Shown here piece after piece: positions 15,366-61,919 of a stretch of DNA of 64,000 nt; position 1 is the first letter of the stretch, and the number at the start of each line of letters is the position of its first letter. A program made the translations under genes and the position numbers. The stretch comes from Eutreptiella sp. 'Long Island Sound 2002'. Taxonomy: Eukaryota > Protista > Euglenida. The stretch lies in the NCBI GenBank assembly GCA_964036045.1, contig OZ038379.1, positions 9,238,001 to 9,302,000 on the forward strand, read 5' to 3'. A model generated the notes under the pieces. It did not search any database. It saw nothing but the letters and a program-made list of their open reading frames with translations, and was not told the origin of the DNA.

Positions 15366-15619
15366 TATGTTACGTTCGGATTGTTCGGATAATTTGCATT
15401 TGTGCAATATGGCACATGTTTGCACACTCTTGAATGCAGTGGTGGGTGAGATTCGGTGGGATGAAAGATTTTTGCCCCACAATGATAATCACTATTTCAA
15501 CACCCACTTCAACGATAACATGCCCATATGCTCAATCGGTGAGTCTTTGTCGGATGTGCTGTTCAATCCCAAGTACGTAGGCCATGTTTATAAGATAGAA
15601 TACAGTATGGATATCCGAT

Positions 15620-16525: not shown

Positions 16526-19500
16526 CTTAGGCGGCTCTATACGCACGTAGACTTCGTTGCTAAAAGGCACAATTGATGGCGATTTCAACATCCGTTTTTT
16601 GCACCCAAAAAAAGCATATCATTTTTTCGGCCAACCCCACGTGGATTTTCATCGTGGGATACAACAACCTCGCCTTTTGTTGCTCTTAGAGCTGCACATA
16701 TACACCCCCGCTTCAGGGCTTGGAATCTTAGCATTTGAAATTTTTGGGCACTGCAGTGCCCAAACCTTCTGGTTGTACTTTTTAGGGGGGTCATTGAAAG
16801 GGTGTGTCTAGTTGTCTCTATAGGTGAATCCACATTGCACAAAGTTACTCCACGCTTGCCCCCCTCTTGTCAATCGGGTCGTAACGTGTTGTTGTTGTTC
16901 TCATAGGCGCTTGTACGATGTATTGAAACGGAACTCTCACATTCATGTACCCAGTATGGGCTAAAATTTGACTTTCACTACTTTTGAGCACTGCAGTGCC
17001 CAAGTTTTTAAAAAGTTGGCAAATTTACCCGCTTCAATTCATTGTGGTGCATAGGTTCCTCGAAGGGCAAGAAAGGCCAACACCTGTGCTTGCGTTGCGT
17101 TGGGTGGCATTCATGGTACCAAATATTTTTTGGCTACGGAGAGACAGACAAACCGACAGGCAAGCAGACAAACAGACAGATAGACACAGAGAGGCATACA
17201 GACAGTCCGACAGACACCCTGAGAGACGGACAGACAGGTAGACAGATGGACACATAGACAGACGGACAGACCGACAGGCAAACAAACAAACAGACAAACA
17301 AATAGACACACAGACAGACAACGGACGGACAAATGGACGGACGGAGGGATAGACAGAGAGACACATAGATAGACACACGGAAGACAAATAGACATACGAA
17401 ACAAGACAGACGAACGGATGGACAGGCGGACGGACGGAGAGATAGACACACTATCTGTCCTCCTGCTACCACAATGCTGCTCCATCATGCATGTACAGAA
17501 CCTTGCAAAAAACATTGACAGCGTTCCGCCCAGATGATCATGCAAATGGGCTTTGGGTTCATTTGGGCACTGCAGTTCCCAAAATTTAGGAAATCAATAT
17601 TTTGAGGTCTCTAATGTCTTGTCCAGTGCATGCCTCATAGTCCGATCCCCTATGGCAAGCATTACCGGATCTCGCCACAATTCATGCTAGGTATGTGCAA
17701 TGTAATCGTCCACATGATCAAATACCCCCCTCTATTCTTCTTCCCCATTCGACGGTGATGAAGTACACCCCGTATAAGTGTTGTGCTAGATCTTCAACAC
17801 TTTGGCACCAATATTCTAGTAGGGGCATTGTCGGTCGATGCAATTTGGTCGTCTGTGTGTAGTATAATGGTTGACATGATGAATGCCACCCCTCTCTAGA
17901 GCACGACCGTGCGCGGTGATGAAGCAGACCTCTATACAATTGTTGTGCCACTGGTCCAACACTTTCACACACGTTTTTTACCAGGGGCATTGAAGGTAGA
18001 GACAAACTTGGTTGTCTGTGCGGAGTCTTGCACCATCTACAGCCATTTTAGAAATAACAACCACAAATTGTGATGAAACACTCGAAAACACGATTGACTC
18101 CGTGTTGGAAGACACCCTATAGACGACCGAATCCGCATCCACCTTCAAGGCCCCTAGTAAAAAATGCGTGTGAAAGTGTTGGACCAATGGCATAACACTT
18201 GTGCAGGAGTGTACCTCAGCACCGCGCAACGGTGGTGCACTGGAGAGTGGGGGTGTTCATCATATCAACCATTACACTACACACGGACAACCAAACTCCA
18301 TCAACCAACAATGCCCCTACTAGAATAAGTGTGCCAAAGTTTTGAAGATCAAGGCAACACCTATACGGGGTGTATTTCATCAACATGGAATGGCGCAGTA
18401 GTTTAGAGGGGGGGGTTTGATCACGTGGATGATTACATTGCACATATCGTGCACAACTGATGGCAAGACCCGATAATGGTTGCTACAGGGGGTGAGACTT
18501 TGAGGCAAGCACCCGACATAGTACATTAGAGACCTCAAAATGTTGGTTTGTAATATTTTGGGAACTGCAGCTCCCAAATGAACTCAAAACCCATTTGCAT
18601 GATATAATCTGGGCGGAAGGAGGTCAATATTCTGTGCGCAACGTTGTGCAGATGCATGAGGGAGCAACCGTGTGGTAGTAGGAGGACAACCATTGTACCT
18701 GTCTCTCCGTCTGTCCATGTGTCCGTCCGTCCGTCTGTCTTGTCTTGTCTGACGGTTTGTCTTCTGTGTTTCTCTCTTTGTGTCTCTCTGTCCCACAGTC
18801 CGTCCGTCCAGTCGTCCGTCCGTCTGTCTGTTGTCTGCCTGTATGTCTGTCTATTTGTCTGTCTGTTTGTTTGCCTGTCGGTCTGTCCGTCCGTGTATGT
18901 GTCTATCTGTTCGTCCGTTTGTCGGGGTGTCCCTCGGACTGTCTCTCTGTCTATCTGTCTGTTTCTCTGCTTGCGTGTCGGTTTGTCTGTCTCTCCGTAG
19001 CCAAAAAATATTTGGTACCATGAATGCCACCCAACGCAACGCAAGCACAAGCGTTGGCCTTTCTTGCCCTTCGAGGAACCTATGCACCACAATGAATTGA
19101 AGCGGGTAAATTTGCCAACTTTTTAAAAATTTTGGGCACTGCAGTGCTCAAAAGTAGTGAAAGTCAAATTTTAGCCCATACGGGGTACATGAACGTGAGA
19201 GTTCCGTTTCAATACATCGTACAAGCGCCTATGAGAACAACAACAACACATTACGACCCATTTCACAATAGGGTCGCAAGCTTGGTGTAACCTTCTGCTT
19301 TGTTTTGGGCGCGGACTGCACACTGCCATGTGTCTTGTGTCACACAGGTGTGAGACTGGTGCCCTTTTTCATGTTTTCGTAATTTTGGGCGCTGCAGTGC
19401 CCAAATTCATCCACTCGCCTTTTTTCTACCCCTCTTGCGCCATTTCTTTTGCAGGCATTGTTGCCCTCATTTATTATTGCATTGGCTGCACTGGCGGCGC

Positions 19501-26900: not shown

Positions 26901-29900
26901 TTTTGAGGCCCTGTTGCGGACTGTGCATGCCAGGATTGTGTTGTTTTGTGTCGATTGTTTTTATCTGCTTCGTCATTTTGCCTTTGGGGCATTTAGGCCC
27001 CTTGCAACCCCCTTCCCCCTCCCGTGCGCTGGCACAGCCTGGCGGGTGCTTCCCCTGAGGTGTCTACGGTGCACCGGAAGGGAAACCTACCAGTATTACC
27101 TGATGCTGAATGTTGTGCTCTGTGCGGGTTGCGATGGGGCCAATAGTGGGGAGTGTTGAATGTTGCACCTGGACGTTGGTTTTACAAGAACTGAAAAGTT
27201 GAATGTCTGCTTCATTTCAATCTGTGATAGTGGATTTCTGAAAGGTCGGAGGAAATACCAGCCACTTGGCCACTTTCCCCAATCCTCTACCCAGCCCTTG
27301 CTACCCTCCAATGCATGAATAAAAAAGGGCAAGTGTAGCACTCAGGGAAAAAACAACAGATGTCACAAAAAACAAGCCAAAGACACTTTTTTGTTTTAAA
27401 AAAAAGCAGATCTGGGGGTCCACCTGTCGCAGCGACAGACGTTTGTCTCTTCTTTGCCTAACAGTCTGCTCCAGCCCTGCCTCCATTGCACCCAAGGGGG
27501 GGGGGTCGCCGGGCCCGGGTCCTTTACGCCAACTCGCCCCCCCCCCCCCCCCCCGCCCTCAAAGTGGCACCAAAGCGGGAGTCGGCGTATGGCCCATTTT
27601 CCCGCCCCCCCCCCCCCCCCTGTGATTGCACCCCTGCCCACGATCCTCCCCAACCTGTATTTTTGTTGCCCTGTCGTTGTTGTACCGTTGTTGTTGCCAT
27701 TGGTCCTGGTTGCTTTTGGTGACAGTTTCCATCTGGGTCTGGGTCCAGGGGTTTCACGTAAGGGGGACACTGAAGAGGCTGGCCTGAATATCCATCCAAA
27801 ACAGCACTGCACCACGCCCCACAACTTGGCAGGTGCAGTGGGGGCTCTCAGTGCCGTACTTGATTTCGGGGGTCCGCAACGAGCACCCGAAGGACGCCAT
27901 GGCATGGGAGGATGCGGGCAAGAGCAAGGACGGGCTGGGCTTCTACAACAAGTTTGTTGCTGCGGACGCCGCCAAGGCTGGCGGAGACCTGGACCTGCCA
28001 GAGACATCCCCCGAGGGACCGCGAGTTCCAAACCACGACTCTGAGCTTTACCGCAAGGAGTTCCACACGTACAAGCCCATGATCAAGGTGGATGCATTGA
28101 TGCATGCATGCATGGGCACGTGGGTGCATGGGCGTACGGGTGAACGGATGACTGGGTGGGTGGATGGGTCGATACATCCACATGCTCATACATGCACGCG
28201 CCCATACTCACACAGTCGTGCCCCCATACATCCGCGTATCCACATGCACCCCTGCACCAATTGCCCCACCCACGCCTACACACCATGCCTCCACACATGC
28301 ATACATCCTCACTGTGTGGGTCTGTGGATGCACGGGTGTCTTTGGGTGTGGGTGTGGGTGTATGGGTGCGTGGGTGTGTGTGTGTGCATGGGTGCATGGA
28401 TGTCTGGTTGTCTGGGTGTATGGGTGTGTGCGCTGGCCACTCCCCTTCCCCGGGTCGTACCCACACGCCTCCCCTGCATACTTGTAAGGGTCCTCAGGGC
28501 ATACAAGGAATCGTGTACCATGTGGGCAGGGGGGTTTCTCACAGTGTCAGTGTGGCGGCTTGGCGCCAAGTGGCTGTACTGTCACGGTATTCAAAGAACA
28601 AGATGTGTAGGGCCGCCCATTTCGCCATTGCACGTGGCCTGCTGACCAGCGCGAATGACGATAACAAGACTGTGCAGTGTTTGTATGCGGTGGTGTGCTG
28701 CATTTCCACGTGCAGGTGCCACCTCAACACCTGTTGCCTGAACTGGTTGCAAGAAAATGTTTTTGGCACTGGAAACAATACTCCAGTTGAGCATAGCGCA
28801 CCACCTATTACTGGGCGGCACCTCTGGCTGTTGGAGTGCATGTTGCTATGCCCTGCTCGAATATGTGGCTTCGGTGCATGTGTCTGTGTGTGACGCCGGG
28901 CTCCCAGAGCTCCCTAATTGTGGTCATATTTTGCTCCACTCCTCCCTCCTCCCCTATGCCGTGTCCAGCATGACGTAGGCACATAAGCAATGTTGCATGC
29001 ACCACCGAGCCCCCCCCCCCCCCCAACTTAAGTGCAGGAACGATCTAGCCATAGACAACTCCTTATGACAAATGAAGCGCTCCTGCCCCTTGCTGCTACT
29101 ATGTTCTCCAGTAACGCACCTGGCCTCATCAACACAATCTTTTTTTTATTTCATTACATTGGATGTTTCGGTGTCTAGTTTCCCGCAACGTGTGTGTATG
29201 TGTGTCTGTGTGTGTGTGTTGACAGTACCATCCGGAGGGGTATGACCCATACTTGTGCACTGATTTCCCCACCTTGCAGTTCTTGTCTCAGGCCCAGTAA
29301 TAGGGCCCTGTGTCTGTGTGTGGTTGGGTGGTTGCATCCAACACAGCACGTCGGTTGTCTGATTGACGTGATACAGCTCTTGTAGATAATTTGCCTCTGT
29401 GACTTGGCCCCTTGGGTGGGGGAGTCAATCGAGCAGCAAGCAGGTGCCTCCTGCTCAGCAAGGTGCAGACGGCCAGCAGGACTGCTTGACCTCCATGCAC
29501 CGCCCGAACCTGCTTTGCTCACCATCATCACAGTTTGTGGTGAGTGCCATGAGCAATATTGTGAAGAGGGGATGGTAAATCTGGGATTAAAGCCGAACAC
29601 ATGTAGGGCTGCTCTGCAGCTCCTGAGGAGTCTTCTTGTTCCGGTTCCCGATTGTGTGTGCGTGTGTATGTGTGTATGTGTGTGGGTGTGTGTGGGGGTG
29701 TGGGGGTGTGGGTGGGTGTGGGTGTGGGTGTGTTCTCTACAGTCTCTTGTGCCCCCGCAATCCTCTATTGCGCCAGCTCCAGCAATTCCACTCCTCTGCT
29801 CCTCAGGTGATGGACAACACCATCCGTGACGGGGGCCTCATCAACAACTGGAAGTTCTCCGACGATTTTGTGAAGGCCGTTTACAATGCGTGTGTTGCGG

Positions 29901-32216
29901 CCGGCGTTGATTACATGGAGGTCGGGTATTTCTCGACCCCCGGCACCTACACCGATGCGGGGCCCTGGCGGCACTGCAGGGACGCAGACCTGCGCCGCGT
30001 CATGGGCGACAACAAGACGTCGCTGAAGCTGTCGGCCATGGTGGATGTGGGGCGCATCACGGCTGACGACATCCCACACAGCAACGACACCCTCATCGAT
30101 ATGGTACGTGTGGCCTTCTACCACGACCAGGTGGAGGAGGCAGTCAAGATCGCCAACGCGTGCACTGACAAGGGGTTTGAGGTGGGCCTGCTTTTCATGG
30201 CGTTGTCCAGCATCAACAAGGTCCTGCTGCCATTGATGCCCCGCAGTGCTACCCGAAATCCACCAAAAGCCTCTTTTCACCCACCCACCCTGGCTGGTAA
30301 CCCCCCCCTTTTTTGGGTAGATCCTGTCTACCCCAAGCAAATGACTGACCCATTCCTTTCAAACAGGAGCAGGGGGAGGAAGGGGGGGATGGGGTGATGC
30401 CCTTCCCCAGGATGGAGACAAGCAGCAGCAGATTGCCTAACCAGGGGGGGAGAGGTAGGCTGTTAGGGTGGGGCAGGCAAATCTGTCTTGTAGGAGTAAC
30501 GCGGTTTTGTGGCAATGCCTGAATGTCTTTGTCGAAAGTCTGTGTTAGACAATCCCAATGCTCAGAGCGAGCGCATTTATTCTTCTTTTCGCCAAGCCTG
30601 CGTTAAAAGGCAGCATGCCCTCAAATTTGCAAAGGTGGGTTTTGCCAAGTCAACTCACAGAATTCTTCAAAATGTTGTGTGGAACCAGCTTTCGCTTCAT
30701 CCTGTTTGCCTGATTTTGCGATTGTTCTGCCCCCTAGACCCCCCCCCCCCCCACCCCTGCCTACCCCCTCCCTTGACGCCGGGGATGGTCCTGAGTTGGT
30801 TGGGGGGGGGTCCAGTCACGCCCTTTTTGGGGGGCGGGGGGTCCAGCATACGCTCATGACCCCCCCGCCCCCAAAAGCGAAAATCCGTGCACCCATGTCC
30901 CCCCCCTCCCCCCTCCTGGGGGGTGGGGACCCTAGGGTGGGTGGGTCCCAAGTGAGGCCATTTTGCCCCCCCCCCCCCCTCCCTGTTGCTGAGCAAATGA
31001 CTGATGGGTATTGAGAGGGCGAAGGAGGAGGGGAGTGAGGAACGGGGAGCCTAAGCTCCGAAGCCTATCATGGGTGCCCTTTTCCAATCCCCCCCCCCCC
31101 CCCAAGCAAAAATCCGCCACCCCCATCACCTTTGAGGGGGATTGATATACTGAGGGTGAGAGTACACGCCGGTCAAGCCTAACCTATCAAGACTGAATAT
31201 TGGGACCGAGCTGGTGGGGGAGGGAACATCAGCTATGATTGGTGAGGGACATCAAGAATGATTCACACATTGATGGCTCTTGACAAAGTGAAATCAGCTT
31301 GCAAGTGAACCCCATCACCACGAGGCCCACTTTCAAGGCTTTTTGGACTTCTGAGGGGCCAAAATGCCCCAAAATGGGCTCAAAATGGGCTCATTTCACC
31401 CGTTGGTGCACCCCAAATGCTCTAGGATGAGGTTTGGAAAAATGCGTTTTTGACCCATTCTTGACCCATTTTTGGTCCCAAAACAGCCCATTTTCAAGGC
31501 ATTTGGGGATTTTCGGAGGAACAAAATGGGCCACCACAAGCTCAAAACGGTCCAAAAACACTAGTTTTAGCGTCGCACATGGTCTAGGATCATTTTTGAG
31601 AAAAGTCATCTTTTTGCCCCTACTGGACCCTGTTGACCCATTTGGGCACCCACCTGTTTGGGCTTGAGCTTGCAGCTTGCCGCAGCCTAGTGGGCCTAGG
31701 TATGGGGGTCTAGGCGTCCGTTTGGGCAATTCTAAGGGGTGGAAACCACAAAAAGTGGCGGGTTGCGGGTGGTGTAGGTGCCCTCGGAATCGCGTTTTGA
31801 GCCATGTAGCCCAAGATATGGCCTATTCTTGGTTTGTGGCTGTCGGCATTTGGACCTTCTGGGGGCCTTTTTGGGCCGTTTCCGCGACATATCATGGAGT
31901 TAGAGGGCTGCAAAGAGCTCATTGACACGCGGAAGTCAAGCCGCACGTGTAGTGTACCCATCGTTTCCCTTCGTTTGGCCGTTTTGAATGCGTTCCGGGG
32001 CTTTTTCGGCCCAAAAATGGCTGTTTTGGGCCCTGAACTGCAGTTTTTGAAACTGAGGTCCGCCACTTGCGAATCCCGTTCCCGGCCGCCACCGTTGAGT
32101 TTCTTGCTCAAACTTTGTGTGATTGTACTTCACACCCATAGGTATCATCCACCAAAATTTCACTGGAATCCAAAGCACCACGACGGAGTTCTGATTTTGG
32201 CCCATTTCGCGCGTGC

Positions 32217-32247
<31 letters not shown>

Positions 32248-33325
32248 GCTTGCTTGCTAAACCTGGTAGGTCCACCCTAGACCCTAAAAAGGGTTATAAA
32301 ACCAAGACTGGTTCCACCAGCTCGGTAAACCTTAATCATAACCCTAACTAACCATGTCCTAGCTAAACTAACAAACTATTGTGCATACCTGCTGCTTGAT
32401 CCCCAGGGGCAGGGAGGGGGGGCAGGGGTTTGAAAGGAAAACGGGGCACCTACTTGGGGTCAGGGTAGGGCTCAGTCACACTGTAGCCCTCACCTAACCA
32501 ACAAGCGTAAATGCATACCTGCTGCTTGATGCATAAACTCTGGTGAGAACCATACGTTGCACCATTGCAGCAACGTGTGGTGGACATGATGCATCACCCT
32601 TTTTACTTGGACCATTGCTGACGTGATTTAGCCTCTTTAATGCCCTGTTTCTCAGTTCTACAATGTTCTCCAACCCCCAAATACTTAGTTTTCCTCTACA
32701 ATGTCCTGGTTACCGCCCTCTCCAGGGAGATGAGGTGAAGGCCCTGGACGTGATTGCCGACAAGTGCCGCTGCAATTTCGTCTACATTGCCGACTCCTAC
32801 GGCAGCCTCTACTGTGAGCAAGTGGAGATGCTGGCCAAGCTCTTCCAGCAGAAGCTGCCAGGCCGCATCGTGGGATTCCACGGCAAGAACAATCAGCACA
32901 TGGCCTACGCCAACACCATCCAGGCCATTTGCACGCTTGAAGGGGTGGTCATGGTGGACAGCTCCATCATGGGACTGGCGCGCGGTGCCGGGATCACCCC
33001 CACCGAGAACATGATGATGTTCCTGAAGAATCCGAAGTTCAAGCTGCGGCCCATTCTTGAGGCGATCCAGACGCACGTGCAGCAGCTCGCGGACGACCTG
33101 GAGTGGGGCCCATCGATGGCGTTGTTGTACTCGGGGGCGCGGAACATGCACCCGAGGGACGCGATGGCGTGGCACGCGGCGGGCAAACGATTGGATGGGG
33201 CGCGCTTCATCGACTCCGTTGCGAGCAAAGTGGCTTTGCCGGAGCCTATTGCAGGAGCAGAGGCAGGGGGCCGTGCTGCGCCACCGCACCCACAGCCACG
33301 CCTCGTAGACGGGATGGAGGCGTGA
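20994..33325 (+). CDS. Tandem double-domain DRE-TIM metallolyase (HOA/HMGL-like aldolase), copy A; 1-nt frameshift in exon 2 (pseudogene or read error)
   Basis: Exons 20994-21318, 24909-25220, 26238-26487, 27833-28087, 29807-30220, 32726-33325. All introns are GT-AG and the phases are compatible. Motifs DCTIRDGG, YMEIG, ADSFGS, FHGHHNQQ and GRGAGN, then a second barrel with DNTIRDGG, YMEVG, ADSYGS and FHGKNN. One C is missing between 25107 and 25108 relative to copy B. Confidence 0.9.
21830..22088 (+). mobile_element. Harbinger-like remnant in intron 1 of copy A
   Basis: FFDFEVGGHDGTYKGRVHVIVPFVGRKN..QQSYN fragment, followed by a family-like right end GCTGGGCGCGCGCCGGGTAAACCCTC. Confidence 0.7.
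22640..23375 (+). repeat. Local dispersed ~45-60 bp repeat (GGACCTTAATAGGCTGACCTGTTTA.GCAACTTTT), 3-4 copies
   Basis: Copies at about 22657, 22767 and 23337, partial copy at about 23257. A B-box-like GGTTCGAATCCC lies at about 22861. Confidence 0.6.
23449..24192 (+). mobile_element. PIF/Harbinger-like deletion derivative (744 bp), GTA TSD
   Basis: GTA|GGGGG...CCCCC|GTA. Internal MDYEIGSMDGAYKGRLHVAWPFIGRKTLTERQKEYNDVHGFYRAHIEHLFARMW. Confidence 0.9.
27493..27624. mobile_element. 132-bp hAT-type MITE with 8-bp TSD ATTGCACC (intron 3 of copy A)
   Basis: CA...TG termini with G/C-run TIRs related to the 4446 element (GGGTCC...ACGCCAACT); ATTGCACC at 27485-27492 and 27625-27632. Confidence 0.8.
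28095..28430. repeat. Low-complexity GCAT/CACAT/GTGTGG simple repeats at the start of intron 4
   Basis: Direct reading; a further GTGTGG tract lies at about 29650-29730. Confidence 0.75.
29505..29600 (+). mobile_element. Short remnant of the Harbinger-like transposase Cys-rich tail
   Basis: ACCATCATCACAGTTTGTGGTGAGTG...GGTAAATCTGGG matches 5575-5610 and about 5780-5795. Confidence 0.55.
32214..32257. repeat. (GCTT)n microsatellite
   Basis: Direct reading. Confidence 0.9.
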
Positions 33326-45500: not shown

Positions 45501-48500
45501 CAGCGGGCTACCCGACCGTCCCTCTTTTGTGATGGGAAGGGTACCTCTTGTCTTGCAGGCCACTGACGAGCAAATTTCTCTGCTTTCTGTGCTCATTGTT
45601 GCGCACTTGCCACCGGGCCTTGACACAGATTTCCTCGGAGGGTTCAAACGCATGTTTCAGCGATTTCACAGAAATGGGACTCCAGGGGCGGTGTCTGGGT
45701 CCTGGGTTTACTGGGGCCCGGGACTGAGGGGCCTTGAGTGGTGTTTGTGATGCGTTGGCCAGTGCTGTCCATAATCAACTTCTTTTGTGACTGCGGTTGG
45801 GAGGAGAGCCGCCACACCGCTAGTGGTCAGTTCCCTGTACCCCAGAATATCCGGGACACAAAGCGGGCGAGGAATCAAAATGGCTACTCCTGATGGGGTA
45901 AAAAACAGTGGACCAGCGGTGCATAGGCATTTAGGAGCAGGTGGGTGCTTGGGTCCACATCCACATCCACAGCCACGAAGGGCTGCAAACGAACCCCCGA
46001 GGTCACGAAGATCTGAGTCTTTTGTGGGGCAAGTCAGGCTGACACTGGACCGCCACAGTCCAAAACCTCTCTTCTACCCTCCAAAATGGGGACATGGGTC
46101 CTGTGTGGGGCATTGGGGGATTTCACATGCCCAAAGAAGCTGACAGGTGCATGGCCACAGCCTAAAGATACCATTGGTGCCCTCCCACATGGTCCCCGAT
46201 TATTTCTAACCAGGTGCTGTCCCCCATTTATGTATTTTGGCTGAGAATTGAGCGGCGTATGTCCCAAGAATGACCAGATTTGTGAACCGCTTTTGGAGAT
46301 GGACAAAATTTGTAGCAATTTGCGGTGATTGGTGGTGTCAATCTTCCTGATACAGGTCTGCATTGGTGCACAAGTGGGCCTTTGGCAGACTGGGTCTTCA
46401 AACATGACAAGGGTCGGCCTTGCAGCCTCGGCATGTCTCATGCGCCAGCCCATGCTCCTGCTCTGCTCCTCAGGTAATGGACAACACCATCCGTGACGGA
46501 GGCCTCATCAACAACTGGAAGTTCTCCGACGACTTTGTGAAGGCCGTTTACAATGCGTGTGTTGCGGCCGGCGTTGATTACATGGAGGTCGGGTATTTCT
46601 CGACCCCCGGCACCTACACCGATGCGGGGCCCTGGCGGCACTGCAGGGACGCAGACCTGCGCCGCGTCATGGGTGACAACAAGACATCGCTGAAGCTGTC
46701 GGCCATGGTGGATGTGGGGCGCATCACGGCTGACGACATCCCACACAGCAACGACACCCTCATCGACATGGTACGTGTGGCGTTCTACCACAACCAGGTG
46801 GAGGAGGCAGTCAAGATCGCCAACGCGTGCACTGACAAGGGGTTTGAGGTGGGCCTGCTTTTCATGGCGTTGTCCAGCATCAACAAGGTCCTGCTGCCAT
46901 TGATGCCCTAGATGCCAGTGCTGCTGCCATCCTATTTTCTCCCACCTTTACGCCCAGTGCAATGGCATTCGTACCTTCACTTGCATCCCAACCAGTGCAT
47001 GACCTTGTGTGACCAATCCTGCTCAGCTTCTGTTCCTCATGCCCCTACCTCCGCACCACATGGAACCAAAACACTGCTAGTCTCAATTTGCACTAGCCAC
47101 TAGGGGGCGTAATCGGCGCTGTGCACAAAGCACACAGGACCGTACCCAAGCTGCATAGTAGTGCCTAGTACCAGTAACTATGAGCCTTCTCATGCATCGA
47201 TATGAGCTGCTTGCATTTTGCTCTCATTTCTAGTGTATTGGTGTGTGTTGTTTTGCATCCTTTCCAAAAGGTTTGTGGTATCTATCAAGAATTTGGATTT
47301 GGCTTGGCCCCTTTCCGGTTGGGGATATGGACTGGCCCCTGTGGCGTACACTGTGATTTCGGCGATGGCCTCCTCTCCGTACCTTTGGAGCTGTCAGGAC
47401 GAAAAGAATCTCAATTGCGTTACGAGGCTGTCCAACATTATGGGGGCGTAGTATGGTCTGTATTGGCAAGAATATGGCCAATTGTAGCAAAACCCCCCAA
47501 CTTCTCCCTGGCATGTGCACACGCTGTGTCGACATGCCCCCCTATGCCCATGCACCTCCCTCACTCAATCAACTCCAGTGTTTTCATCAACCCTGCCGCA
47601 ATGTCGCCACCTCAGTGTGTCAATCAAGCAACCTCAACTCGTCAATCAAGAAGTTTCAGTGCCATGATCGAGCAATCCAGTGCTTCAAGCATGCCACTCC
47701 ATCGAGCCACCCCAGTGCCTAAATCTAACAACTCAGTCAAGCCACACCAGTGCCTCAAGCAAGCACCTGCTTTTGAGTCCCCCATCAGACTTTTTTCGGA
47801 GCAGTGGTAGTTTTCTTGCGCCTATTTTGACTGCTGGCATCTTCTGACCTGGGCTGGGTGGGTAACTTTGTGCGACCATACAATACATATGACCCAGGGC
47901 GACATGGGGCTTGTTTTGAATGGTATGTGTTGGGTTCCGAGCCCCCTGCGGCCTTCACCCTTGACCCCTCCCCTTTCACCCCCAACCCAACGCATGGGCA
48001 ACCAACACGCCTATCCACAAATGGATGATTCCCTCCTCAAAAGGGGGGCACGTACGTACACCAGGAAGTACCAACCGGCATACTCCTTCAGCCTGTATGG
48101 CACCCCCCCCCCCCACACACACACGCACACACCACACGCTTGCAAGCTTCACGTCGGCCCGAAAATAGCCCGATCCACCGCCTCAGTGACCATCTTTACT
48201 TGCAGGGAGATGTGGTGAAGGCCCTGGACGTGATTGCCGACAAGTGCCGCTGTAATTTCGTCTACATTGCCGACTCCTACGGCAGCCTCTACTGTGAGCA
48301 AGTGGAGATGCTGGCCAAGCTTTTCCAGCAGAAGCTGCCAGGCCGCATCGTGGGATTCCACGGCAAGAACAATCAGCACATGGCCTTTGCAAACACCATC
48401 CAGGCCATTTGCACGCTTGAAGGGGTGGCCATGGTGGACAGCTCCATCATGGGACTGGCGCGCGGTGCCGGGATCACCCCCACCGAGAACATGATGACGT

Positions 48501-48790
48501 TCCTGAAGAATCCGAAGTTCAAGCTGCGGCCCATTCTTGAGGCGATCCAGACGCACGTGCAGCAGCTCGCGGACGACCTGGAGTGGGGCCCATCGATGGC
48601 GTTGTTGTACTCGGGGGCGCGGAACATGCACCCGAGGGACGCGATGGCGTGGCACGCGGCGGGCAAACGATTGGATGGGGCGCGCTTCATCGACTCCGTT
48701 GCGAGCAAAGCTGCGCGGCCGAGGGCAGTTGCCGGTGCAGAGGCAGGGGGCCGTGCTGCGCCACCGCTGCCAGAGGACTGCCGGGCGTAA
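39578..48790 (+). CDS. Tandem double-domain DRE-TIM metallolyase (HOA/HMGL-like aldolase), copy B, intact, 719 aa
   Basis: Exons 39578-39902, 40799-41111, 43404-43653, 44130-44402, 46474-46887, 48206-48790 total 2160 nt with an open frame. GT-AG introns sit at the same positions as in copy A, and the catalytic motifs are the same. Confidence 0.93.
41830..42370 (+). pseudogene. DXD glycosyltransferase (GT32 / capsular-polysaccharide-synthesis-like) pseudogene nested in intron 2 of copy B
   Basis: IF*G...CVNS*RRHLPDWQINVLNERSIEQYL...SHVIRLSLLYTYGRVWLDASVLL...ESWILAAP, then after a frameshift KLWTT...SYFMIYDAINYIL. This fits the C..SW...PdW / SD..Rl.lL..yGGvWlDa / SWfiaa pattern. In-frame TGA at 41861 and 41927. 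Confidence 0.75.
42778..42822 (+). repeat. Second short copy of the 5' part of the glycosyltransferase pseudogene
   Basis: TGTCCAATGAACACTCCTGTTCGGACCGCATTTTTTAGGGACC versus TGTCCAACGAACACTTCCGTTCAGACCGTATTTTTTGAGGACC at about 41826-41868. Confidence 0.7.
45215..45345 (+). repeat. Dispersed ~130-bp repeat, second copy at about 47965-48090
   Basis: GGGCAACCAA...GATTCCCTCCTCAAAAGGGG..CACGTACG.ACACC.GGAAGTACCAACCGGCA occurs in introns 4 and 5 of copy B. Confidence 0.75.
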
Positions 48791-54619: not shown

Positions 54620-55153
54620 ATGAAATTCTTCGTCTACCTGCTTTTCATCTTGCTGATGGCCCTCTTCTACTCCCAAATCGCGCCTTCTGGCCTCTACTTT
54701 CGAAGCAACAAGATTGTCATGCGAGGGTACAACCACCGGCACAACCGCAGCATCGATGGCGGCTGTGCACCAGGTCGCAGTAGCACGATCCGTGTGCATG
54801 AGAAATGTGTCCCTGGGAGTAGTTGCGGCTGGAACTTCACCCTGCGTGGCCCCACCGCCCAATTGACTCTATCCTTCTCGGGCGGAACGCAAGTGTGCGT
54901 CTCATGCACCGGCCAGCGCTGCCCATCGCCATCGATCGTCACACAGTCGTGGCCCCGGCTCCCATACCACCAGTTCTTGGTCGAGGTGCTATCATTCCCG
55001 ACGGAGTCTCTTGACACTGCCTGGGCCGCAGCGCAGCCTGCCCGGACCGACGGCCTCCCGCTGCAGACGGCCCTGCACCTGCCCTCGGGCTGGCACCCCA
55101 GTGACTTCCCGCCACAACAGCGGCACCAAGGCCAACCCTATGCCACGCTTCAG
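54620..55153 (+). CDS. Exon 1 of the receptor-like ADP-ribosyltransferase: signal peptide, Cys-rich segment, start of beta repeat 1
   Basis: MKFFVYLLFILLMALFYSQIAPS hydrophobic leader; 178 codons ending at CAG|GT, phase 0, in frame with the acceptor CAG|GTC at 56179/56180. Confidence 0.75.
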
Positions 55154-56179
55154 GTCAACGAAGGGGGGCAGTTGTTCTTCTTCCCCTCACCTTCCGTTAT
55201 CCCTCACACCTTTACAACTCCCATCCCCCTTGTGCTCTCTTCCTTTTCTTCCGTGGCATTTGCTTCTCACCAGTCACCAGCCTCTAACACATCTCCCTCC
55301 TCTGCATCATTTGTCTCGTACCTCTTTGAGGTTTCCACACGTGACCCCCACCCACCCCTTCTCCTGCCCCTGCGGGCCCAGTTAGCTAGTCACAAAGGGT
55401 GGCTGGGTCTGGCCCCTGGTAATATTGGCGCCGACGGGTGGTCTCTTCAGTCAAAGTCTGGGGCGCTCTGACCTAGTGCCTTGCGAGCGAAGGGTCATTG
55501 TTCCGACTATTTAACCGTCCGTATATTTCGCCCCGATGCAGCAGGGATTATGCAGCCCCCCCCCCCCCCCCAGTACCAACCGGTATATTTAGTCAGCCTT
55601 TATGCCCCCCTCCCGCAAGGGGCTTCGGCCCTTTCAAGTGACACCCGTTGCGGCGGCATTTGTGGGTGGGCAGTGGCTCAGACGAGTTCAGTACGGATGT
55701 GAGTGATACACGTCGAAAACGCCGAGCCCAAGAGGGTAATCAAGAGGAATCCGGAAGGAGACTAAAGGCCCTATTCTGACCTGAAACCCAATCGGTTGGG
55801 GGCGCCTCACGGCGCCTTGCTGGACAGCACAGCACATTTGTGACGGCTCCTGGCGGCGTGTTGCTGGACAACACGAACAATATGTGTCGCAGCTTCGCCG
55901 CTTGGGGCCTGAAGTACTGTGTGAGGATGCCAGAGTGATTCTGAACATAAGCGACCATCGCTGATGTATGGCCAAGGGGCTTCAGCCCACTGCCAGTGTG
56001 TGGTGGATGGGGGGGCCGGTCTCACCCCGAGAAGCCCCCCCCCCCCCCCTCCCCAGCCGTGCACACTGCAGCTCTCGCCTTCCCCCGTCTCTCTCCTCAT
56101 GCCATTCCCTCTTCCTCTCCTTCTTAAAACCTCCTCCCCGGTCCTCTCCGCCCTCCCTCCTCCCTTCGCCGCGATGCAG

Positions 56180-59100
56180 GTCAACGCAGCGGGGCAGCTC
56201 GTGTCCCTCGCCGGGTCCATCGCCGGGCTGGCCCCCATCATCACGGTCCTGCACCCCCGGTACCGCCCCCGCGCGCGCCGCGTCTTCCACGTGCCCACGA
56301 GCGCGGGCGGCGCCCGAGTGGACGTGCTGCCGTCCGGGGAGGTGCAGCTCCGCACCGCCTTCACCGACTGCCTCGCGTGGCTTCTCCTGAACCGGATCCA
56401 GTTCTTTGCCGAAGGTGGCGCTTTGGATGGCACTCCGTCGGCGGGAGGGGGCGAGCTGGTCCTACAGGCCCCGTGGGCCTCGTATGGGCACGGGCACCAG
56501 CCCGCGTCCTGGTGGGCCCACGGCTGGCGGGTCACGCTCGGCGGGGTCGTCGCCAACGCCTCCCGCGACGTCCCCATCGCTCGTTTGCCGTCGCGCGCGC
56601 GCCCCGGCACGCCCCAAGTGTACTGGGTCCGCTCTGACACCGGGTCCGTCCAAGTCACGGTCGACGCGCGGGGGAAGGTCCAGTGGACTGCCGGGCGCAC
56701 CGACCAGTGGCTGAGCCTTGACGGCGTTGCGTTTGACGTGCGGCGGGGGACGCCGCTGCCGCTGGCGCCCGGGGCCGCGCCGGACCCCGCGAACCCCCCG
56801 CAGATCCTGTGCTCCGAGTCCCCCGCGGAGCCGATCGCGCTGGTCGGGCTCGTGCGGGTCCCGGTGCACGCGACGCACGTGGCGACTGTTGCGCCGCACG
56901 CGCCCCGGCGCCCGCTGCGGGTGTTCAGCGCGGGGAACGCGAGCCTGGAGGTGACCATCGACACGGACGGGCGCGTCACGGTGCCGCAGGGGTCCGGGGG
57001 GCACTGGCTCAGCCTCGACGGCATCGGCTACTACGCCGCCTGCTTCCGGCGCTCCGACGCCTGCGTTGGGGACGCTCACACCGTCTGGCGACGGGAGAAC
57101 AGCACGCGCGACGAGTGCCGGAGCGCATGCGAGCGGTTCCGATGCCGAAGCTTCGTCTGGGCGCCCGGGGGCTCGTGTGCGCTGAAGGCCCGGGACCCCA
57201 TGACGGCCCCGCCCGGCGCACTATCGGAATGCTCCGGCGCGCAGGGCTACACCGACACGTGCCCTCTGTCCCACGACGCGTGGCAGTGGCTGAGCCCCGC
57301 GCCTGCGATTCCCTTCCACAACGCGACCCCGCGGCTGACGCTGGCGACGTCGCTGCCGTCCTTTGCGGAGGTCGAGGTCTCGGGCCCCGTGGAGCACTGC
57401 TTCTGGCACTGGGACGCCGTCCAGCGGTACGACGCGGCGCTGCTGCCGCGCATGGCCGCCGTTGCGGACGCGCTGTCCTACGGCTTCCTGGCCATCGGGG
57501 CGGTCTTCTGCTGCGGGGCGGCGTGCCAGGCCTGGCAGACGGGGGCGGCCGCGCGGTGCACGCGCGTTCTCCGGAGCGTGTGCCGCCCGGCACCCCCCGC
57601 CCCGCGCCAGGGCGCCCGCCCCGACCCCGCGCCCACCGGCGTCGGCCCCACGACGCTCTGCCTCTGGCTGCACCGCGCCGCCGGGCTCCTGGGGGTCCTC
57701 GTGTGGCTCCTGCAGCTGGCGCTGTGCGGCCTGCTCGCCGTCTTCCACCACAGCGTGACCCCCCCGGCCCCCCCCATCGACATGTACTGGTTCATCCCCC
57801 TCCTCCCGTGGGCGACGCTGCTCTGCGGGATCAGTCTCGTCCTGGACCACCTCGGCCTCCCCCTCAGACTGCCCGCGTACGGCTTCTGGCGCGTGGTCGT
57901 GGCCCTCGGGGGCACCCTCGGGTTCCTCGGGGGCCTGCAGGCCGCCGTGCAGTCGTACATCTTCGCGGAGGTCCTCACGGGGCAGATGACGCGGGGCAAC
58001 CGGCAGGGGTCGCTGCTGGGGGCCTTCTGGAGCGCCTTCTTCCTGGGCATCACCGCGTTCACCGCCTTCAAGACGTGGTGCGCCCTGCTGCTCACCGCCG
58101 CCGTCACGCTCGCGTGGTTCCTGCCGCTGTACGAGTCGCGCGCGCAATTCAACTACGGCGGGGCCGCCGGCATCTTCATGCCGTGCGCCATGTGGCAGGG
58201 GATGCTGCTCGGCGTCGGCGGCTCCGCGGTCCTCTCCTTCCTCGCGCGCATCCGCCGGCTGCCCCCCGACGGCCCGGCGGTGGCCGGCATGCAGCTCCGG
58301 TGGGGCTGGAGCCCCCGGCCCGGCCACGCCCCCCATGGCCTCGCGGGGCCGCTCCGGGCGGGACGCGCGCTCCGGCGGCTCAACGCGGTGCTACGGCGGC
58401 ACCGAGTCGCGGTCGCGTGGCTCAAGAAGTGCGGCGGCACGGCGCTGACCGCCGCCGCCCTCGCGTGCACGGGCTTCCTCGCGTACCAGTGGGAGGCGGC
58501 GCTCGTGCCGCGCATCGTCGTGGCCTGGCACCAGCTCCTGCTGGAGTGCCACGCCGGGGGCGTGGTCGTGGTCACCGGCCTGTACATGGCGCTGATGCTG
58601 GTGCTGGCGTGGGCCGTGGCCCTGGTCGGCTGGTACCGGCAGCAGCTGCACCGGGGGCTGGTGTTCCTGCCGTTCGGCGCCGCCTGCCGGATCCTGCTGC
58701 TGGCTGCGCCCATGGCCGGCGGACTGGCAGGCGTTGCCTGGCGGGTCGTGGCCCACGGCGTCGGGCTGTACCGGCACGGGCAGCTCTCGTTCTGCGGTCT
58801 CCGGCAGAACAACCTGGTCCCCGCCGAGAACCGGGCGCTGTACCTCCTGTACTTTGCCGTGGCGGTGGCCCTGGGGTGCGCCATGGGGCTCCTGCTGTGG
58901 CTGCACGCGCGACGCGTCACGCTGCTGCACCTCGCCGCGGGCGCGGGCTGGTGCCCGGCGCCGCTGGTGCGCCTGCTGGTGGTCATTGGGAGCGAGGGCG
59001 TGCACGCGCGCACCGATGGCGGTAGGACCGCGCTGCACCTGGCGGCCCGGAGCGGCCGTCCCGCGGTGGTGCGGGCGCTGCTCGCGTCCGGCGCGAGCCC

Positions 59101-61378
59101 GACGTTCCGGGACCTGCGGAACGACACGCCCATCCACGCCGCGGCCGCGCGGGGGGACGCAGTCCCGACGCTGTGGCCGCTGGTGGAGGCCGCGGCACAG
59201 GCCATGGACGCGGAGGCCCTGGAGCTGACGCTGTGCGCCCTCAACTGCGCGGGCCAGAGCGCGCTGCACGTGGCGCTGCTGCGTCAGGGCGCCCCCCGCT
59301 GTCGAGTGGCCGTGGAGGCGTTGCTCAGCGGCCTGGGGATGCCGGGGGCTGCCGAGGCGCAGGTCCGGACTCCGAACGGCAACGGCGCCACGGCGCTGCA
59401 CGTGGCGCTGGAGCGAAGGCTGAACAAAGGGGCGGATCTGATGGAGGTCCTGTACCGGCACGTGGACCTCGGAGACGTCACCCTCCGAAACGCGGGAGGG
59501 GAGGCCCCGATCCATTTGGCGGCGGCCCACCCGAACGGCCTGCCGCTCGTGGAGGCCACCCTGGGGGCCACGGACACGCGCGCGGCCGCCTGGACCACCG
59601 TCGAGGGCAGGACCCCGCTGTTCTACGCGCTCGAGAACGGGGCCGCGATGATCCGGCGGCTGGGCGCCGCGGAGGTGATCAACCGGCAGGAGACGACCAA
59701 GGGCTGGACGGCGCTGCACATGGCGTGCATGCAGTACAACCTGGGCGCGGTGAGGACGTTGCTGGACCTGCAGGCGGACCCGAACCTTGCGGACCGCCGG
59801 GAGCTGACGCCGCTGTACCATCTGAACCTGAAGTACAGCCAGATCATGAAGGGGGGAGCGTACGTGGCGCGGAAGGCGGAGCTGCTGCAGGCGCAGCAGC
59901 TGCCGCCGCAGTTCCATCACATCCCCGAGGCGCGGCTGATGAAGTGCCTGCAGATGGGCACGGAGCACTTCGGGTCCTTCGCGTTTGCGGAGACGGACCT
60001 GGACTTGGGGCCCGTCATTCAGGCCATCGAGGAGGGCGCGGGTCTCGGGGGCGCGGCCCTGCCGCAGCCCCTGGGCGACACCGCGAGCGCGCGGCTGTTC
60101 CACGCGGCGGTCCTCTACCGGAACGGGGCGGCGGTGCGGCAGCTGTCGGAGGCGGGGGCCGACCCCCTGGACCCCCGGGCCACGACGTGGGACGGACACA
60201 GCGCGGCGCTGTGGTGCGAGGTCACCGGGAACGGGCTCCAGCGGCACTTCCACCCGCCGACCGAGGCGGACGAGGCGGCGCTCGGGCGGTACGAGGCGGC
60301 GCGGCGGGCGCACCCGGACGTCGAGCTCCTGGACCTCACCGCCGGGCCGGAGCGCGTCCCGCGGGACCCGCCGCCGGGGGCGCCGGTCCCGGAGGCGCAC
60401 GGGGCGGAGGACCTGTTCCCGCTGCACTACCGGGACTTGCCCGAGCTGATGGACTGGCTGCGGTGCGTCGGGCGGCACCCGACGATGTGGCCCCTGAAGA
60501 GCGACTACCCCCCGGAGGAGTACCCGCAGGGGCATCCGGAGGGGCGGGTGCTGAACGACCCCATGGGGAAGCTGCTGTGGGACGCCCGCGCGACGGTCTG
60601 CGCGCAGGCCCTCAAGGGCCCCCTCCGCAACCGCCCGCGCGCCATCTTCCTCTTCCGCCTCTACACCGCCGAGAGCGGGCTGTACCGGCAGAGCAACGAG
60701 GCCATGCGGACGGGCAAGGACCTCGCCTTCTGGCGGCCCTTCATCTACTACATCATGCAGGAGATGAACCTGCCGGAGCCGGGCCGGGCCCCCCACCCGC
60801 CCTTGGGGCCGCGGGTGGCGTTCCGGGGCCTGAAGGTCCCGCTGGACGCCGCGACGTACGCCACGTTCCGCCCGGGCGCCACGTTCTCGTGGGAGGCGCT
60901 CACGAGCACGTCCACCAACTTCGACGAGGCGCGGTCGTTCATGAGGGAGATGCTCTGCGCCATCCGGGTCCACACGTACGAGGACATCGGGCAGTACTCC
61001 AAGTTCCCGGATGAGGAGGAGCTGCTGCTGCCCCCCGGCTCCAAGTTCGCGGTGGTCAAGCTCATTGACGTCCCGACGCACCCCCAGGGCCTGGACGCGG
61101 CGCAGCCCCTGTCCCCGGCCGAGCTTCGCTCCCTGGACAAGGTCTGCGTCGTGCTGGAGCAGCTGAAGATGCCGCGGCTGGTGCCGGTGCCCATGAACCT
61201 CCCCCGCGAAAAGGTGCACGGGAAGGTGGAGGTCACCGTGACCCCGCGCGCGTTGATCTGCTCCAAAGACGCGCGCGGGCCGCGGCCCTCCAGAGATCTC
61301 CGTGCGATGATCTCCTCCCGAGGGGCAACGGGCACCCCCGGTGCAGGGGTGGGCCCTCCACCCCATCCCTTGCTTTGA
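56180..61378 (+). CDS. Exon 2 of the receptor-like protein: phage-tail-fibre-like repeats, PAN/Apple, about 11 TM helices, ankyrin repeats, C-terminal mono-ADP-ribosyltransferase (about 1910 aa spliced)
   Basis: 5.2-kb open frame with almost all third positions G/C. Repeats V.L.G.....I..L....RP...V...G.V...W.SLDG at about 56180-57035. PAN-type C..EC...C....C.SF......C.LK at 57035-57240. Hydrophobic helices at about 57460-58930. Ankyrins (GRTALHLAA, DTPIHAAA, GATALHVA, GWTALHMA) at about 59010-59830. ART motifs LYT...LY..N, FRG (R 60824), STS (60905-60913), FPDEEELLLPPG (ExE 61013-61021). Confidence 0.92.
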   Translation, partial: VNAAGQLVSLAGSIAGLAPIITVLHPRYRPRARRVFHVPTSAGGARVDVLPSGEVQLRTAFTDCLAWLLLNRIQFFAEGGALDGTPSAGGGELVLQAPWASYGHGHQPASWWAHGWRVTLGGVVANASRDVPIARLPSRARPGTPQVYWVRSDTGSVQVTVDARGKVQWTAGRTDQWLSLDGVAFDVRRGTPLPLAPGAAPDPANPPQILCSESPAEPIALVGLVRVPVHATHVATVAPHAPRRPLRVFSAGNASLEVTIDTDGRVTVPQGSGGHWLSLDGIGYYAACFRRSDACVGDAHTVWRRENSTRDECRSACERFRCRSFVWAPGGSCALKARDPMTAPPGALSECSGAQGYTDTCPLSHDAWQWLSPAPAIPFHNATPRLTLATSLPSFAEVEVSGPVEHCFWHWDAVQRYDAALLPRMAAVADALSYGFLAIGAVFCCGAACQAWQTGAAARCTRVLRSVCRPAPPAPRQGARPDPAPTGVGPTTLCLWLHRAAGLLGVLVWLLQLALCGLLAVFHHSVTPPAPPIDMYWFIPLLPWATLLCGISLVLDHLGLPLRLPAYGFWRVVVALGGTLGFLGGLQAAVQSYIFAEVLTGQMTRGNRQGSLLGAFWSAFFLGITAFTAFKTWCALLLTAAVTLAWFLPLYESRAQFNYGGAAGIFMPCAMWQGMLLGVGGSAVLSFLARIRRLPPDGPAVAGMQLRWGWSPRPGHAPHGLAGPLRAGRALRRLNAVLRRHRVAVAWLKKCGGTALTAAALACTGFLAYQWEAALVPRIVVAWHQLLLECHAGGVVVVTGLYMALMLVLAWAVALVGWYRQQLHRGLVFLPFGAACRILLLAAPMAGGLAGVAWRVVAHGVGLYRHGQLSFCGLRQNNLVPAENRALYLLYFAVAVALGCAMGLLLWLHARRVTLLHLAAGAGWCPAPLVRLLVVIGSEGVHARTDGGRTALHLAARSGRPAVVRALLASGASPTFRDLRNDTPIHAAAARGDAVPTLWPLVEAAAQAMDAEALELTLCALNCAGQSALHVALLRQGAPRCRVAVEALLSGLGMPGAAEAQVRTPNGNGATALHVALERRLNKGADLMEVLYRHVDLGDVTLRNAGGEAPIHLAAAHPNGLPLVEATLGATDTRAAAWTTVEGRTPLFYALENGAAMIRRLGAAEVINRQETTKGWTALHMACMQYNLGAVRTLLDLQADPNLADRRELTPLYHLNLKYSQIMKGGAYVARKAELLQAQQLPPQFHHIPEARLMKCLQMGTEHFGSFAFAETDLDLGPVIQAIEEGAGLGGAALPQPLGDTASARLFHAAVLYRNGAAVRQLSEAGADPLDPRATTWDGHSAALWCEVTGNGLQRHFHPPTEADEAALGRYEAARRAHPDVELLDLTAGPERVPRDPPPGAPVPEAHGAEDLFPLHYRDLPELMDWLRCVGRHPTMWPLKSDYPPEEYPQGHPEGRVLNDPMGKLLWDARATVCAQALKGPLRNRPRAIFLFRLYTAESGLYRQSNEAMRTGKDLAFWRPFIYYIMQEMNLPEPGRAPHPPLGPRVAFRGLKVPLDAATYATFRPGATFSWEALTSTSTNFDEARSFMREMLCAIRVHTYEDIGQYSKFPDEEELLLPPGSKFAVVKLIDVPTHPQGLDAAQPLSPAELRSLDKVCVVLEQLKMPRLVPVPMNLPREKVHGKVEVTVTPRALICSKDARGPRPSRDLRAMISSRGATGTPGAGVGPPPHPLL

Positions 61379-61523
61379 CCGGAAGCACAGCGCACTTGCG
61401 GGGCAAGGTCCGTGCTTTGAACGTGAACGGGGCGGTCGATGGACCTGGATATGATGAGGGGGGGGGGGGCGTCCTACTGCTTCCAGTAGCACCATCGCCG
61501 TTGGTGAGGCTTGGAGAAAAGGA

Positions 61524-61919
61524 TTGCGGGATGGCCAATTGCTGTTTTTTGAGGCTGACAGTGCTTGCACATTTTGCAGATCTGAAGCGAATGTTTCTGA
61601 TGATGGCCAGCCCCCCCAGAAGAAACAGAAGGCGACTGATGCTCACACACCTGCGACAGCCAGAATTACACGGTCTGTTGATACAATCTCTGATTTCCCA
61701 CCTCAAAAGACACAAAAATTGGAGAACCAGCTGAAACAGAAATTTCGGAAAGCGGAGGAACAGTTACGGAAAGAACGGGACAAAGTGAAAAAAAAAAAAA
61801 AAAAAGGAAAAGACGCAAGTCGAGCGCCTCAAGCGGCAGACCGAGGAAGCAAACAGACAAGCAGAGCAAAAAATGCGGAAAGAACGGGAGAAAATGAAGA
61901 AAGAAAGGACAGAGATTGA
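61524..61919 (+). other. K/E/R-rich short ORF, possibly part of a decayed element
   Basis: 131-aa charged ORF containing an A-homopolymer; no family motif recognised. Confidence 0.2.

Follow-up and report, generated by a model that had tools for sequence, protein, structure and literature searches.

Gene structure and domain order

The window analysed here is a 64,000-nucleotide stretch of contig OZ038379.1 from Eutreptiella sp. 'Long Island Sound 2002', a marine phototrophic euglenid, and it contains on its forward strand a split gene that is predicted to encode a multi-pass membrane protein ending in a mono-ADP-ribosyltransferase (ART) domain. An uninterrupted open reading frame (ORF) of 1804 codons occupies positions 55964–61378 (+). 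When the part of this frame from 56180 onwards is joined to a shorter coding piece upstream (54620–55153), the join is in frame and yields a protein of about 1910 residues that runs from a hydrophobic leader, through a Cys-rich and beta-rich ectodomain, a membrane region of about 11 helices and an ankyrin array, to the ART domain (Table 1).

The relationship between the two pieces was assessed by comparison with a paralogue, P0004 (1866 residues), which is read from one ORF elsewhere in the same genome. Residues 1–170 of P0004 align with the first piece at 42% identity over 178 residues (E 2e-38), and residues 173–1826 align with the second piece at 35% identity over 1750 residues. Because P0004 is continuous across the join, both pieces belong to one gene and no protein is lost or gained there. 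The length of the ORF alone is weak evidence, as off-frame and antisense ORFs reach 1059 residues in DNA of 73% GC; the gene is beyond chance because of its domain matches, its GC content at third codon positions (GC3, 0.94) and the conservation among its paralogues. The window holds a nuclear gene with this domain order and an intact catalytic motif, and the gene, its architecture and its topology, taken alone, are very probably as described here.

Table 1. Features of the split ART gene, in positions of the window. GC3, GC content at third codon positions; pLDDT, predicted local distance difference test score.
Feature	Position	Strand	Remarks
First coding piece	54620..55153	+	178 codons; leader, then Cys-rich domain; 2 N-glycosylation sequons (NRS, NFT); GC3 0.74
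Putative signal peptide or signal anchor	54620..54688	+	~23 residues; Kyte–Doolittle peak 2.21 over residues 1–23
Interruption, putative spliceosomal intron	55154..56179	+	1026 nt; GT at 55154, AG at 56178–56179
Second coding piece	56180..61378	+	1732 codons plus stop; GC 73.5%, GC3 0.94
Three homologous beta-rich repeats	56198..57040	+	about 56198–56410, 56522–56740 and 56831–57040
Cys-rich PAN/Apple-like module, sub-threshold	57044..57406	+	PAN_1 E 0.002, PAN_4 E 0.032; 7 invariant Cys
Multi-pass membrane region	57452..58906	+	~11 helices; 9 strong, 7th and 8th marginal
Ankyrin repeat array	58916..59830	+	at least 7 repeats; Pfam ankyrin families and 7 core motifs
Linker	59831..60562	+	~240 residues; conserved among paralogues, aligned with P0003 and P0004
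R-S-ExE mono-ADP-ribosyltransferase domain	60563..61162	+	R 60824–60826, S-T-S 60905–60913, E-x-E 61013–61021
C-terminal tail and stop codon	61163..61378	+	pLDDT <50 at residues 305–314 of the modelled piece

The ART domain and the ankyrin array

The C-terminal domain passes the Pfam ART family PF01129 with 37.7 bits (cut-off 22.3; E 1.8e-9), and its paralogues score 27–39 bits. In an alignment of 54 homologues, the catalytic arginine (60824) is invariant, and at least 90% of the sequences retain the serine at 60905 and the glutamates at 61013 and 61019; the R-S-ExE motif that a preliminary description of this DNA, made from its letters, had placed in the domain thus falls on the motif columns of the family. 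No cysteine is found among the conserved columns of the same alignment. Searched against the PDB, the profile of the alignment retrieved Vis (1e-23), Tre1 (5e-23), HopU1 (6e-23) and rat ART2.2 (1.6e-19), with ExoT/S, XopAI, SpvB and the C2 and iota toxins ranking lower.

The preliminary description had made its assignment depend on whether this domain would model as an ART fold, and it does. The AlphaFold2 model has a pLDDT of 83.5 and a predicted template modelling score (pTM) of 0.81, and Foldseek returned 114 PDB matches at E ≤ 1e-3, led by XopAI, HopU1 and Tre1. The best neighbours are all R-S-E ARTs; Tre1 superimposes with a TM-score of 0.78 (normalized to the target) and a root-mean-square deviation of 2.9 Å. 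In the R-S-E clade, an E-x-E motif goes with arginine as the acceptor, and from the ExE of the window's domain we infer that it is specific for arginine.

Five Pfam ankyrin families match above their cut-offs upstream of the ART domain: Ank_2 (E 1.4e-27, 96.5 bits), Ank (E 3.2e-16, 59 bits), Ank_3, Ank_4 and Ank_5. The count of at least six ankyrin-like repeats given previously was, if anything, low, with at least seven now recognized from these families and the core motifs. The linker between the array and the ART domain has no Pfam match.

The ectodomain

The N-terminal part of the protein bears out most of what had been described. The first 23 residues of the first piece are hydrophobic, as expected of the claimed leader (whether signal peptide or anchor), and the N-terminus of P0004 is equally so. 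Neither Pfam nor PHROG families match the Cys-rich domain that follows. Profile–profile comparison with hhalign shows the three beta repeats to be homologous to one another (R1–R2, E 1.6e-9; R2–R3, E 1e-10; R1–R3, E 2.5e-4). The N-glycosylation sequons that had been noticed (NRS, NFT, NAS, NST and NAT), of which NAS occurs twice, all lie in the part predicted to be outside. For the PAN/Apple pattern, the cysteines stood and the family assignment did not reach its threshold: cysteine is invariant at seven positions of this region in four paralogues, PAN_1 scores 15.9–18.3 bits (18.3 in the window) against a cut-off of 21.4, with two of four paralogues at E about 0.002, and PAN_4 scores 14.7 bits against 27. 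Within this region, a low-confidence model has a helix and then a hairpin (residues 310–337).

Sequence profiles relate the beta repeats to domains at the C-terminal end of minor tail proteins from phages. The window's ectodomain matches phrog_13362 at E 2.9e-6, and this family is matched by all four paralogues (best 2.2e-7); phrog_3639, annotated 'minor tail protein', is matched by two of the four at 1.5e-7. PHROG families have no curated cut-offs. A profile search also recovered short proteins with the same repeat from unrelated metagenomes: P0168 and P0169, with three repeats each, and P0170, with approximately six repeats and a C-terminal anchor. These three proteins match phrog_3285, another 'minor tail protein' family (2.8e-31 for P0170), together with phrog_11445 and phrog_3639, and among annotated phage proteins P0170 also hits minor tail proteins from Streptomyces and Microbacterium phages. 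The ectodomain repeat, of about 70–100 residues, corresponds to the last 60–100 or so positions of the phage profiles. A tblastn search of phage genomes with the window's ectodomain gave no match, and a PDB profile search with the ectodomain gave a spurious match to Rv2074 only.

P0169 (L010:2316–3350) and P0170 (L014:1818–3935) consist of this repeat alone, apart from the anchor of P0170. Their contigs come from unrelated sequencing runs and are gene-dense, and genes nearby encode an ankyrin protein, a LysM protein and an ATPase of the T2SSE type.

Membrane region and topology

The claim of about 11 hydrophobic helices is borne out by hydropathy profiles of four paralogues, in which 11 hydrophobic segments align; the marginal seventh and eighth reach 1.0–1.7 on the Kyte–Doolittle scale. 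An AlphaFold2 model of the ectodomain and membrane part, built from four sequences, also contains 11 long helices, at a mean pLDDT of only 42. Forty columns of the membrane region are invariant among the four paralogues, and they include Pro, Gly, Trp, Asp, Glu, Lys and Gln in both helices and loops. The region has no Pfam match at E ≤ 1, a four-sequence profile of it has no PDB match at E ≤ 10, and protein searches with the ectodomain and membrane part retrieved only paralogues from the same genome. As judged against Pfam and the PDB, the 11-helix region belongs to no known multi-pass family.

Four observations bear on the orientation of the protein. First, the Arg-rich loop of 55 residues between helices 7 and 8 speaks for both of them as membrane spans, which would give an odd total of 11. 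Second, with the N-terminus outside and the C-terminus inside, Lys plus Arg residues in the loops number 20–23 inside and 7 outside in the window protein, 13 and 5 in P0004, 17 and 6 in P0159, and 6 and 6 in the truncated P0003 piece. Third, six of seven sequons fall in the approximately 600 residues outside and one in the 820-residue inside part, although the latter is richer in Asn; all four aligned paralogues share the NAS/NAT sequon of the second repeat. Finally, the Cys-rich modules are N-terminal to the helices and the ankyrins are C-terminal to them, beside the ART domain. The arrangement proposed in the preliminary description, with a sensor outside and the ART domain in the cytosol, is therefore supported by indirect evidence from the sequence.

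A paralogous family in one genome

With the ART part as query, an exhaustive HMMER search of 1.84 billion representative proteins found 227 matches at E ≤ 1e-3, of which four, all from this one assembly, reached E ≤ 1e-30. Among the 150 best ART matches, proteins of the same genome alone combine many helices, ankyrins and an ART domain. The family in this genome comprises six near-full-length copies, including the window's, one fragment and one distant relative. When P0004 was mapped onto the paralogous loci, its own locus (L002) held a full-length copy in a single reading-frame piece without interruption; the full-length copies in the window, L003 and L004 were in two, three and four reading-frame pieces, that in L008 was in five aligned pieces, and a nearly full copy in L009 was in seven. 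L007 retains an ART fragment with part of the linker. The distant paralogue, P0008 (L005; 28% identity), has its own leader, ectodomain and helices; only the stretch that starts with its last helix and takes in the ankyrins and the ART domain can be aligned. The copies other than the window's lie on seven other contigs with coverage of 28–36x, and several are interrupted.

The search for paralogues has thus added five near-full-length relatives, all in the same genome, and the architecture was found in no other organism. The fusion of an ankyrin–ART pair to an 11-helix domain and a phage-tail-like ectodomain was not found in Pfam, the PDB, 5.8 billion proteins of other organisms or the literature, and the earlier statement that no described protein has this architecture holds for Pfam, the PDB and the literature. 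Literature searches turned up neither a membrane-receptor ART nor any account of ART proteins in euglenids.

Reverse-transcriptase and RNase_H ORFs are present just upstream of two paralogues (L003:3588–6443 and L005:1013–1786). Retroposition may have spread the family, the L002 copy being without an interruption. Downstream of the paralogue in L004, at 11894–18536, a set of small ORFs (107, 155, 65, 206 and 128 residues) recurs two or three times as a tandem segmental repeat.

The interruption

The ends of the 1026-nucleotide interruption are flanked by a direct repeat, D6 (55136–55186 and 56162–56212), of which 37 of 51 nucleotides are identical and which is in exact register with the donor and the acceptor; none of 200,000 random pairs matched as well. 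The interruption begins much as the second coding piece does and ends much as the first one does. Such a pattern would be expected if the sequence arose by local duplication or by insertion with a long target duplication. Within the interruption, approximately 219 nucleotides (about 55689–55904) are 72% identical to L005:1726–1934, which lies beside the RNase_H ORF upstream of P0008. This stretch is a dispersed repeat, possibly of retroelement origin. The two coding pieces of the window were analysed separately.

Base composition and surroundings

The gene's long exon coincides with a sharp GC island at 56000–61500, where the GC content is 70–78%, as compared with 45–64% in the rest of the window. 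Codon bias accounts for this island of 73% GC: GC3 ranges from 0.80 to 0.95 in the paralogues and from 0.82 to 0.85 in neighbouring HMGL-like exons. Horizontal transfer as the source of the island was rejected, given that its excess GC is at third codon positions and that the neighbouring exons are alike in this respect. The off-frame and antisense ORFs of 1059, 738 and 405 residues in the window are free of domains, and they were dismissed as genes and regarded as by-products of GC richness.

There are few long ORFs in the window outside this gene. It also contains, on the forward strand, at least two tandem copies of an exon-split HMGL-like (PF00682) gene (29636–30397, 32663–33325 and 48140–48790). 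Scans of the window for tRNAs and Rfam families gave no match. A prokaryotic or viral origin of the window was rejected on the strength of these negative scans, the small number of long ORFs, the split HMGL-like exons and the presence in the same assembly of exons identical to proteins of Eutreptiella gymnastica. A dinoflagellate source was dismissed on the same grounds. A scan of the window for bacterial promoters and terminators, which is not relevant for a eukaryote, gave counts at or below those expected from shuffled sequence.

Homopolymer runs of G or C, 12–20 nucleotides long, occur at 52000, 53341, 53530, 55557, 56037 and 61458, some of them away from the gene. A C run at 56031–56051 and a G run at 61453–61473 form an 86% inverted pair that brackets the GC-rich exon. 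About 400 nucleotides past the stop codon is a purine-rich region (61750–61906) with an A run of approximately 20 nucleotides (near 61787–61806) and a 48-nucleotide repeat 109 nucleotides apart. The ORF at 61524–61919 has no Pfam match.

Proposed function and alternative explanations

We propose that the protein is a receptor whose output is ADP-ribosylation. Its N-terminal 600 or so residues, with the leader, the Cys-rich domain, the three phage-tail-tip-like repeats and the PAN-like module, would face the outside or a lumen, and its C-terminal 820 or so residues, with the ankyrins, the linker and the R-S-ExE ART domain, would lie in the cytosol. The ART domain would then be a cytosol-facing, arginine-directed mono-ADP-ribosyltransferase held at the membrane, and the ankyrin array may recruit its protein substrates. 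The multi-pass domain would couple the ART to the ligand of the ectodomain, probably a glycan or a surface polymer, such that ligand binding might determine how active the enzyme is, whether it clusters or where it is located. Signalling, immunity and prey sensing are conceivable settings, each of them conjectural. We assign this explanation as a whole, including the coupling of the ART to a ligand, a probability of approximately 0.45.

Several observations weigh against it. The window protein (P0001) and P0008, both from the genome assembly, are each the sole member of their 90% cluster, with no transcript-derived sequence beside them, whereas the soluble ART proteins of E. gymnastica in the same collection do come from transcriptomes. 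In the mapping of P0004, no paralogue is interrupted at the window's position, and an interruption that carries a dispersed repeat at a position unique among paralogues could be an insertion and not an intron. If exactly one of the marginal helices 7 and 8 were to span the membrane, the parity would flip, and with it the side on which the ART domain lies. The model of the ectodomain and membrane part is unreliable: with a pLDDT of 42, its top Foldseek matches, the receptor-binding heads of phages TP901-1 (lactococcal) and PSA (Listeria), came at E ≥ 4e-3 and none reached E ≤ 1e-3; these matches are in keeping with the profile results for the repeats but serve as a lead only. Finally, the word-indexed protein searches missed L008, a paralogue from the same genome, and are weak evidence of absence; for this reason, the absence of the architecture elsewhere rests mainly on the exhaustive ART-domain search.

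Next after ligand coupling we rank a membrane-tethered enzyme or adhesin that transduces no signal. Here the ART would be constitutive, the ectodomain would anchor the protein to a surface polymer or in an organelle lumen, and the multi-pass region would be a plain anchor or have a transport function of its own. The protein carries no signalling module known to Pfam; the membrane region of P0008 cannot be aligned apart from its last helix, which suggests that this module is replaceable; and P0170 bears repeats of the same type with nothing more than a C-terminal anchor. However, 40 invariant columns across four paralogues that are only about 30% identical exceed what a plain anchor needs, and we regard this explanation as rather unlikely.

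Less probable again is that the window holds an unexpressed or decaying copy in which the interruption is a gene-breaking insertion, within a family of recent duplicates that are not all functional. This would account for the want of transcript-derived members in the collection, the dispersed repeat that is found both in the interruption and beside an RNase_H ORF, the retroelement ORFs next to two paralogues and the reduction of L007 to an ART fragment, and long ORFs are cheap at 73% GC. Yet both coding pieces are open and in frame with a clean GT..AG between them, and their join reproduces the continuity of the paralogue. The catalytic residues, the invariant cysteines and the sequons have all been kept, GC3 in the long exon is at the high end for coding sequence of this genome, and other paralogues are interrupted elsewhere, as is the case in intron-rich euglenid genes. 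Decay is, on this evidence, improbable.

A reverse topology would put the N-terminal part inside and make the ART an ecto-enzyme of the vertebrate ARTC kind. It would agree with membership of the same Pfam family as the vertebrate ecto-ARTs and with the parity left uncertain by two marginal helices. The N-terminal leader, the sequons and the Cys-rich modules point the other way, as do the ankyrins adjoining the ART domain, a Lys plus Arg bias of 3:1 in favour of an inside C-terminus and the ART alignment with no conserved Cys, which together make it very improbable. Foreign DNA, whether from horizontal transfer, a virus, contamination or chimeric assembly, is scarcely credible, despite the GC steps at 56000 and 61500, the poly-C and poly-G runs that flank the island and the phage and bacterial origin of the nearest solved or annotated relatives of the repeats and the ART, because the island is one long exon whose excess GC is at third positions as in host exons, the first piece lies outside the island yet is part of the gene, six further copies and the distant paralogue are spread over seven contigs at 28–36x coverage with several of them interrupted, and the nearest relatives of the ART domain are euglenid proteins. 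Any transfer would be ancient and not specific to this locus.

Endogenous eukaryotic R-S-E ARTs are known mainly as vertebrate ecto-enzymes, and where arginine is ADP-ribosylated inside cells, bacterial toxins are mostly responsible. If the receptor proposal is correct, this chemistry has been put to a different use, with a cytosol-facing, toxin-type ART as the output stage of a receptor in the membrane, and a phage tail-tip binding domain has found a second role on the surface of a eukaryotic cell. Among sequenced material, the family is confined to one euglenid genome, and its six near-full-length copies form a tractable set. Should the copies prove silent, what is left would be a curiosity: the turnover of a gene family in a protist genome rich in repeats.

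Comparison with known systems

The window's domain shares its hidden Markov model match (PF01129), its R/S-T-S/E-x-E motif and its fold with the R-S-E ARTs, among them ART1–5 and ART2.2, Vis, Tre1, HopU1, XopAI, SpvB, ExoS/T and the iota and C2 toxins. The vertebrate members are small ecto-enzymes that are GPI (glycosylphosphatidylinositol)-anchored or secreted, and the bacterial ones are secreted toxins or effectors. By contrast, the ART domain in the window is the predicted cytosolic C-terminus of a multi-pass protein of about 1910 residues and follows an ankyrin array. It also departs from the vertebrate ecto-ARTs (ARTC) in its position after 11 helices and ankyrins, in a charge bias that places it inside and in having no conserved Cys, whereas conserved disulfides stabilize the ecto-ARTs.

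Tankyrases use ankyrin clusters to recruit the substrates of an attached PARP-type ART; they are soluble, belong to the H-Y-E clade and make poly-ADP-ribose. What they share with the window protein is the proposed logic of substrate recruitment by ankyrins, an analogy for which no sequence relationship was found. The distal domains of phage minor tail proteins (PHROGs 3285, 3639, 11445 and 13362) match the ectodomain repeat, the window's own matches being modest (E 2.9e-6). Unlike the phage domain, for which no ligand is annotated, the repeat in the window is triplicated in tandem on a eukaryotic membrane protein.

An independent receptor-like layout is found in the stramenopile Incisomonas marina, in which P0030/P0160 carry leucine-rich repeats (LRR) and nine TSP1 repeats ahead of a single helix, a protein kinase and, at the C-terminus, a PF01129 ART. 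As in the window protein, the ART is opposite a repeat-rich ectodomain. These uncharacterized transcriptome predictions differ from the window protein in their single helix, the kinase before the ART, the lack of ankyrins and an unrelated ectodomain. It is possible, if on the unlikely side, that the proteins of the window's family are true receptor ADP-ribosyltransferases, which would turn the binding of an external ligand (probably a glycan, by way of the phage-tail-tip-like domains) into arginine ADP-ribosylation of ankyrin-recruited targets in the cytosol, and that such receptors were invented at least twice in protists, as a multi-pass form in a euglenid and as a single-pass form with a kinase in a stramenopile.

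Among named proteins, the closest relatives of the ART domain all come from euglenids (Entosiphon, Ploeotia, Euglena longa and Eutreptiella). E. gymnastica has a varied ART repertoire. One of its proteins, P0165 (A0A7S4LC46), is soluble and 1728 residues long and joins an F5/8-C-like region and WD40 repeats to an ART at its C-terminus; it is known from a transcriptome and is identical on an ENA contig. Another, A0A7S4LEK9, is matched at 107 of 107 residues by an exon on another contig of the present assembly (ENA ERZ25074135), in which an exact copy of the window's protein sits on a 1.09-Mb contig. With the euglenid relatives of the ART domain, these identities mark the source of the window as E. 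gymnastica or a strain nearly identical to it. Soluble ankyrin–ART proteins, including A0A7S4LEK9 and those of Entosiphon, Ploeotia and Euglena longa, have the ankyrins before the ART, as in the window protein. They are without its leader, ectodomain and helices and have RWD, WWE, WD40 or F5/8-C-like partners, and none has been characterized. The pairing of ankyrins with an ART domain is common in euglenid transcriptomes, and what is new in the window protein is its fusion to an 11-helix domain and a phage-tail-like ectodomain.

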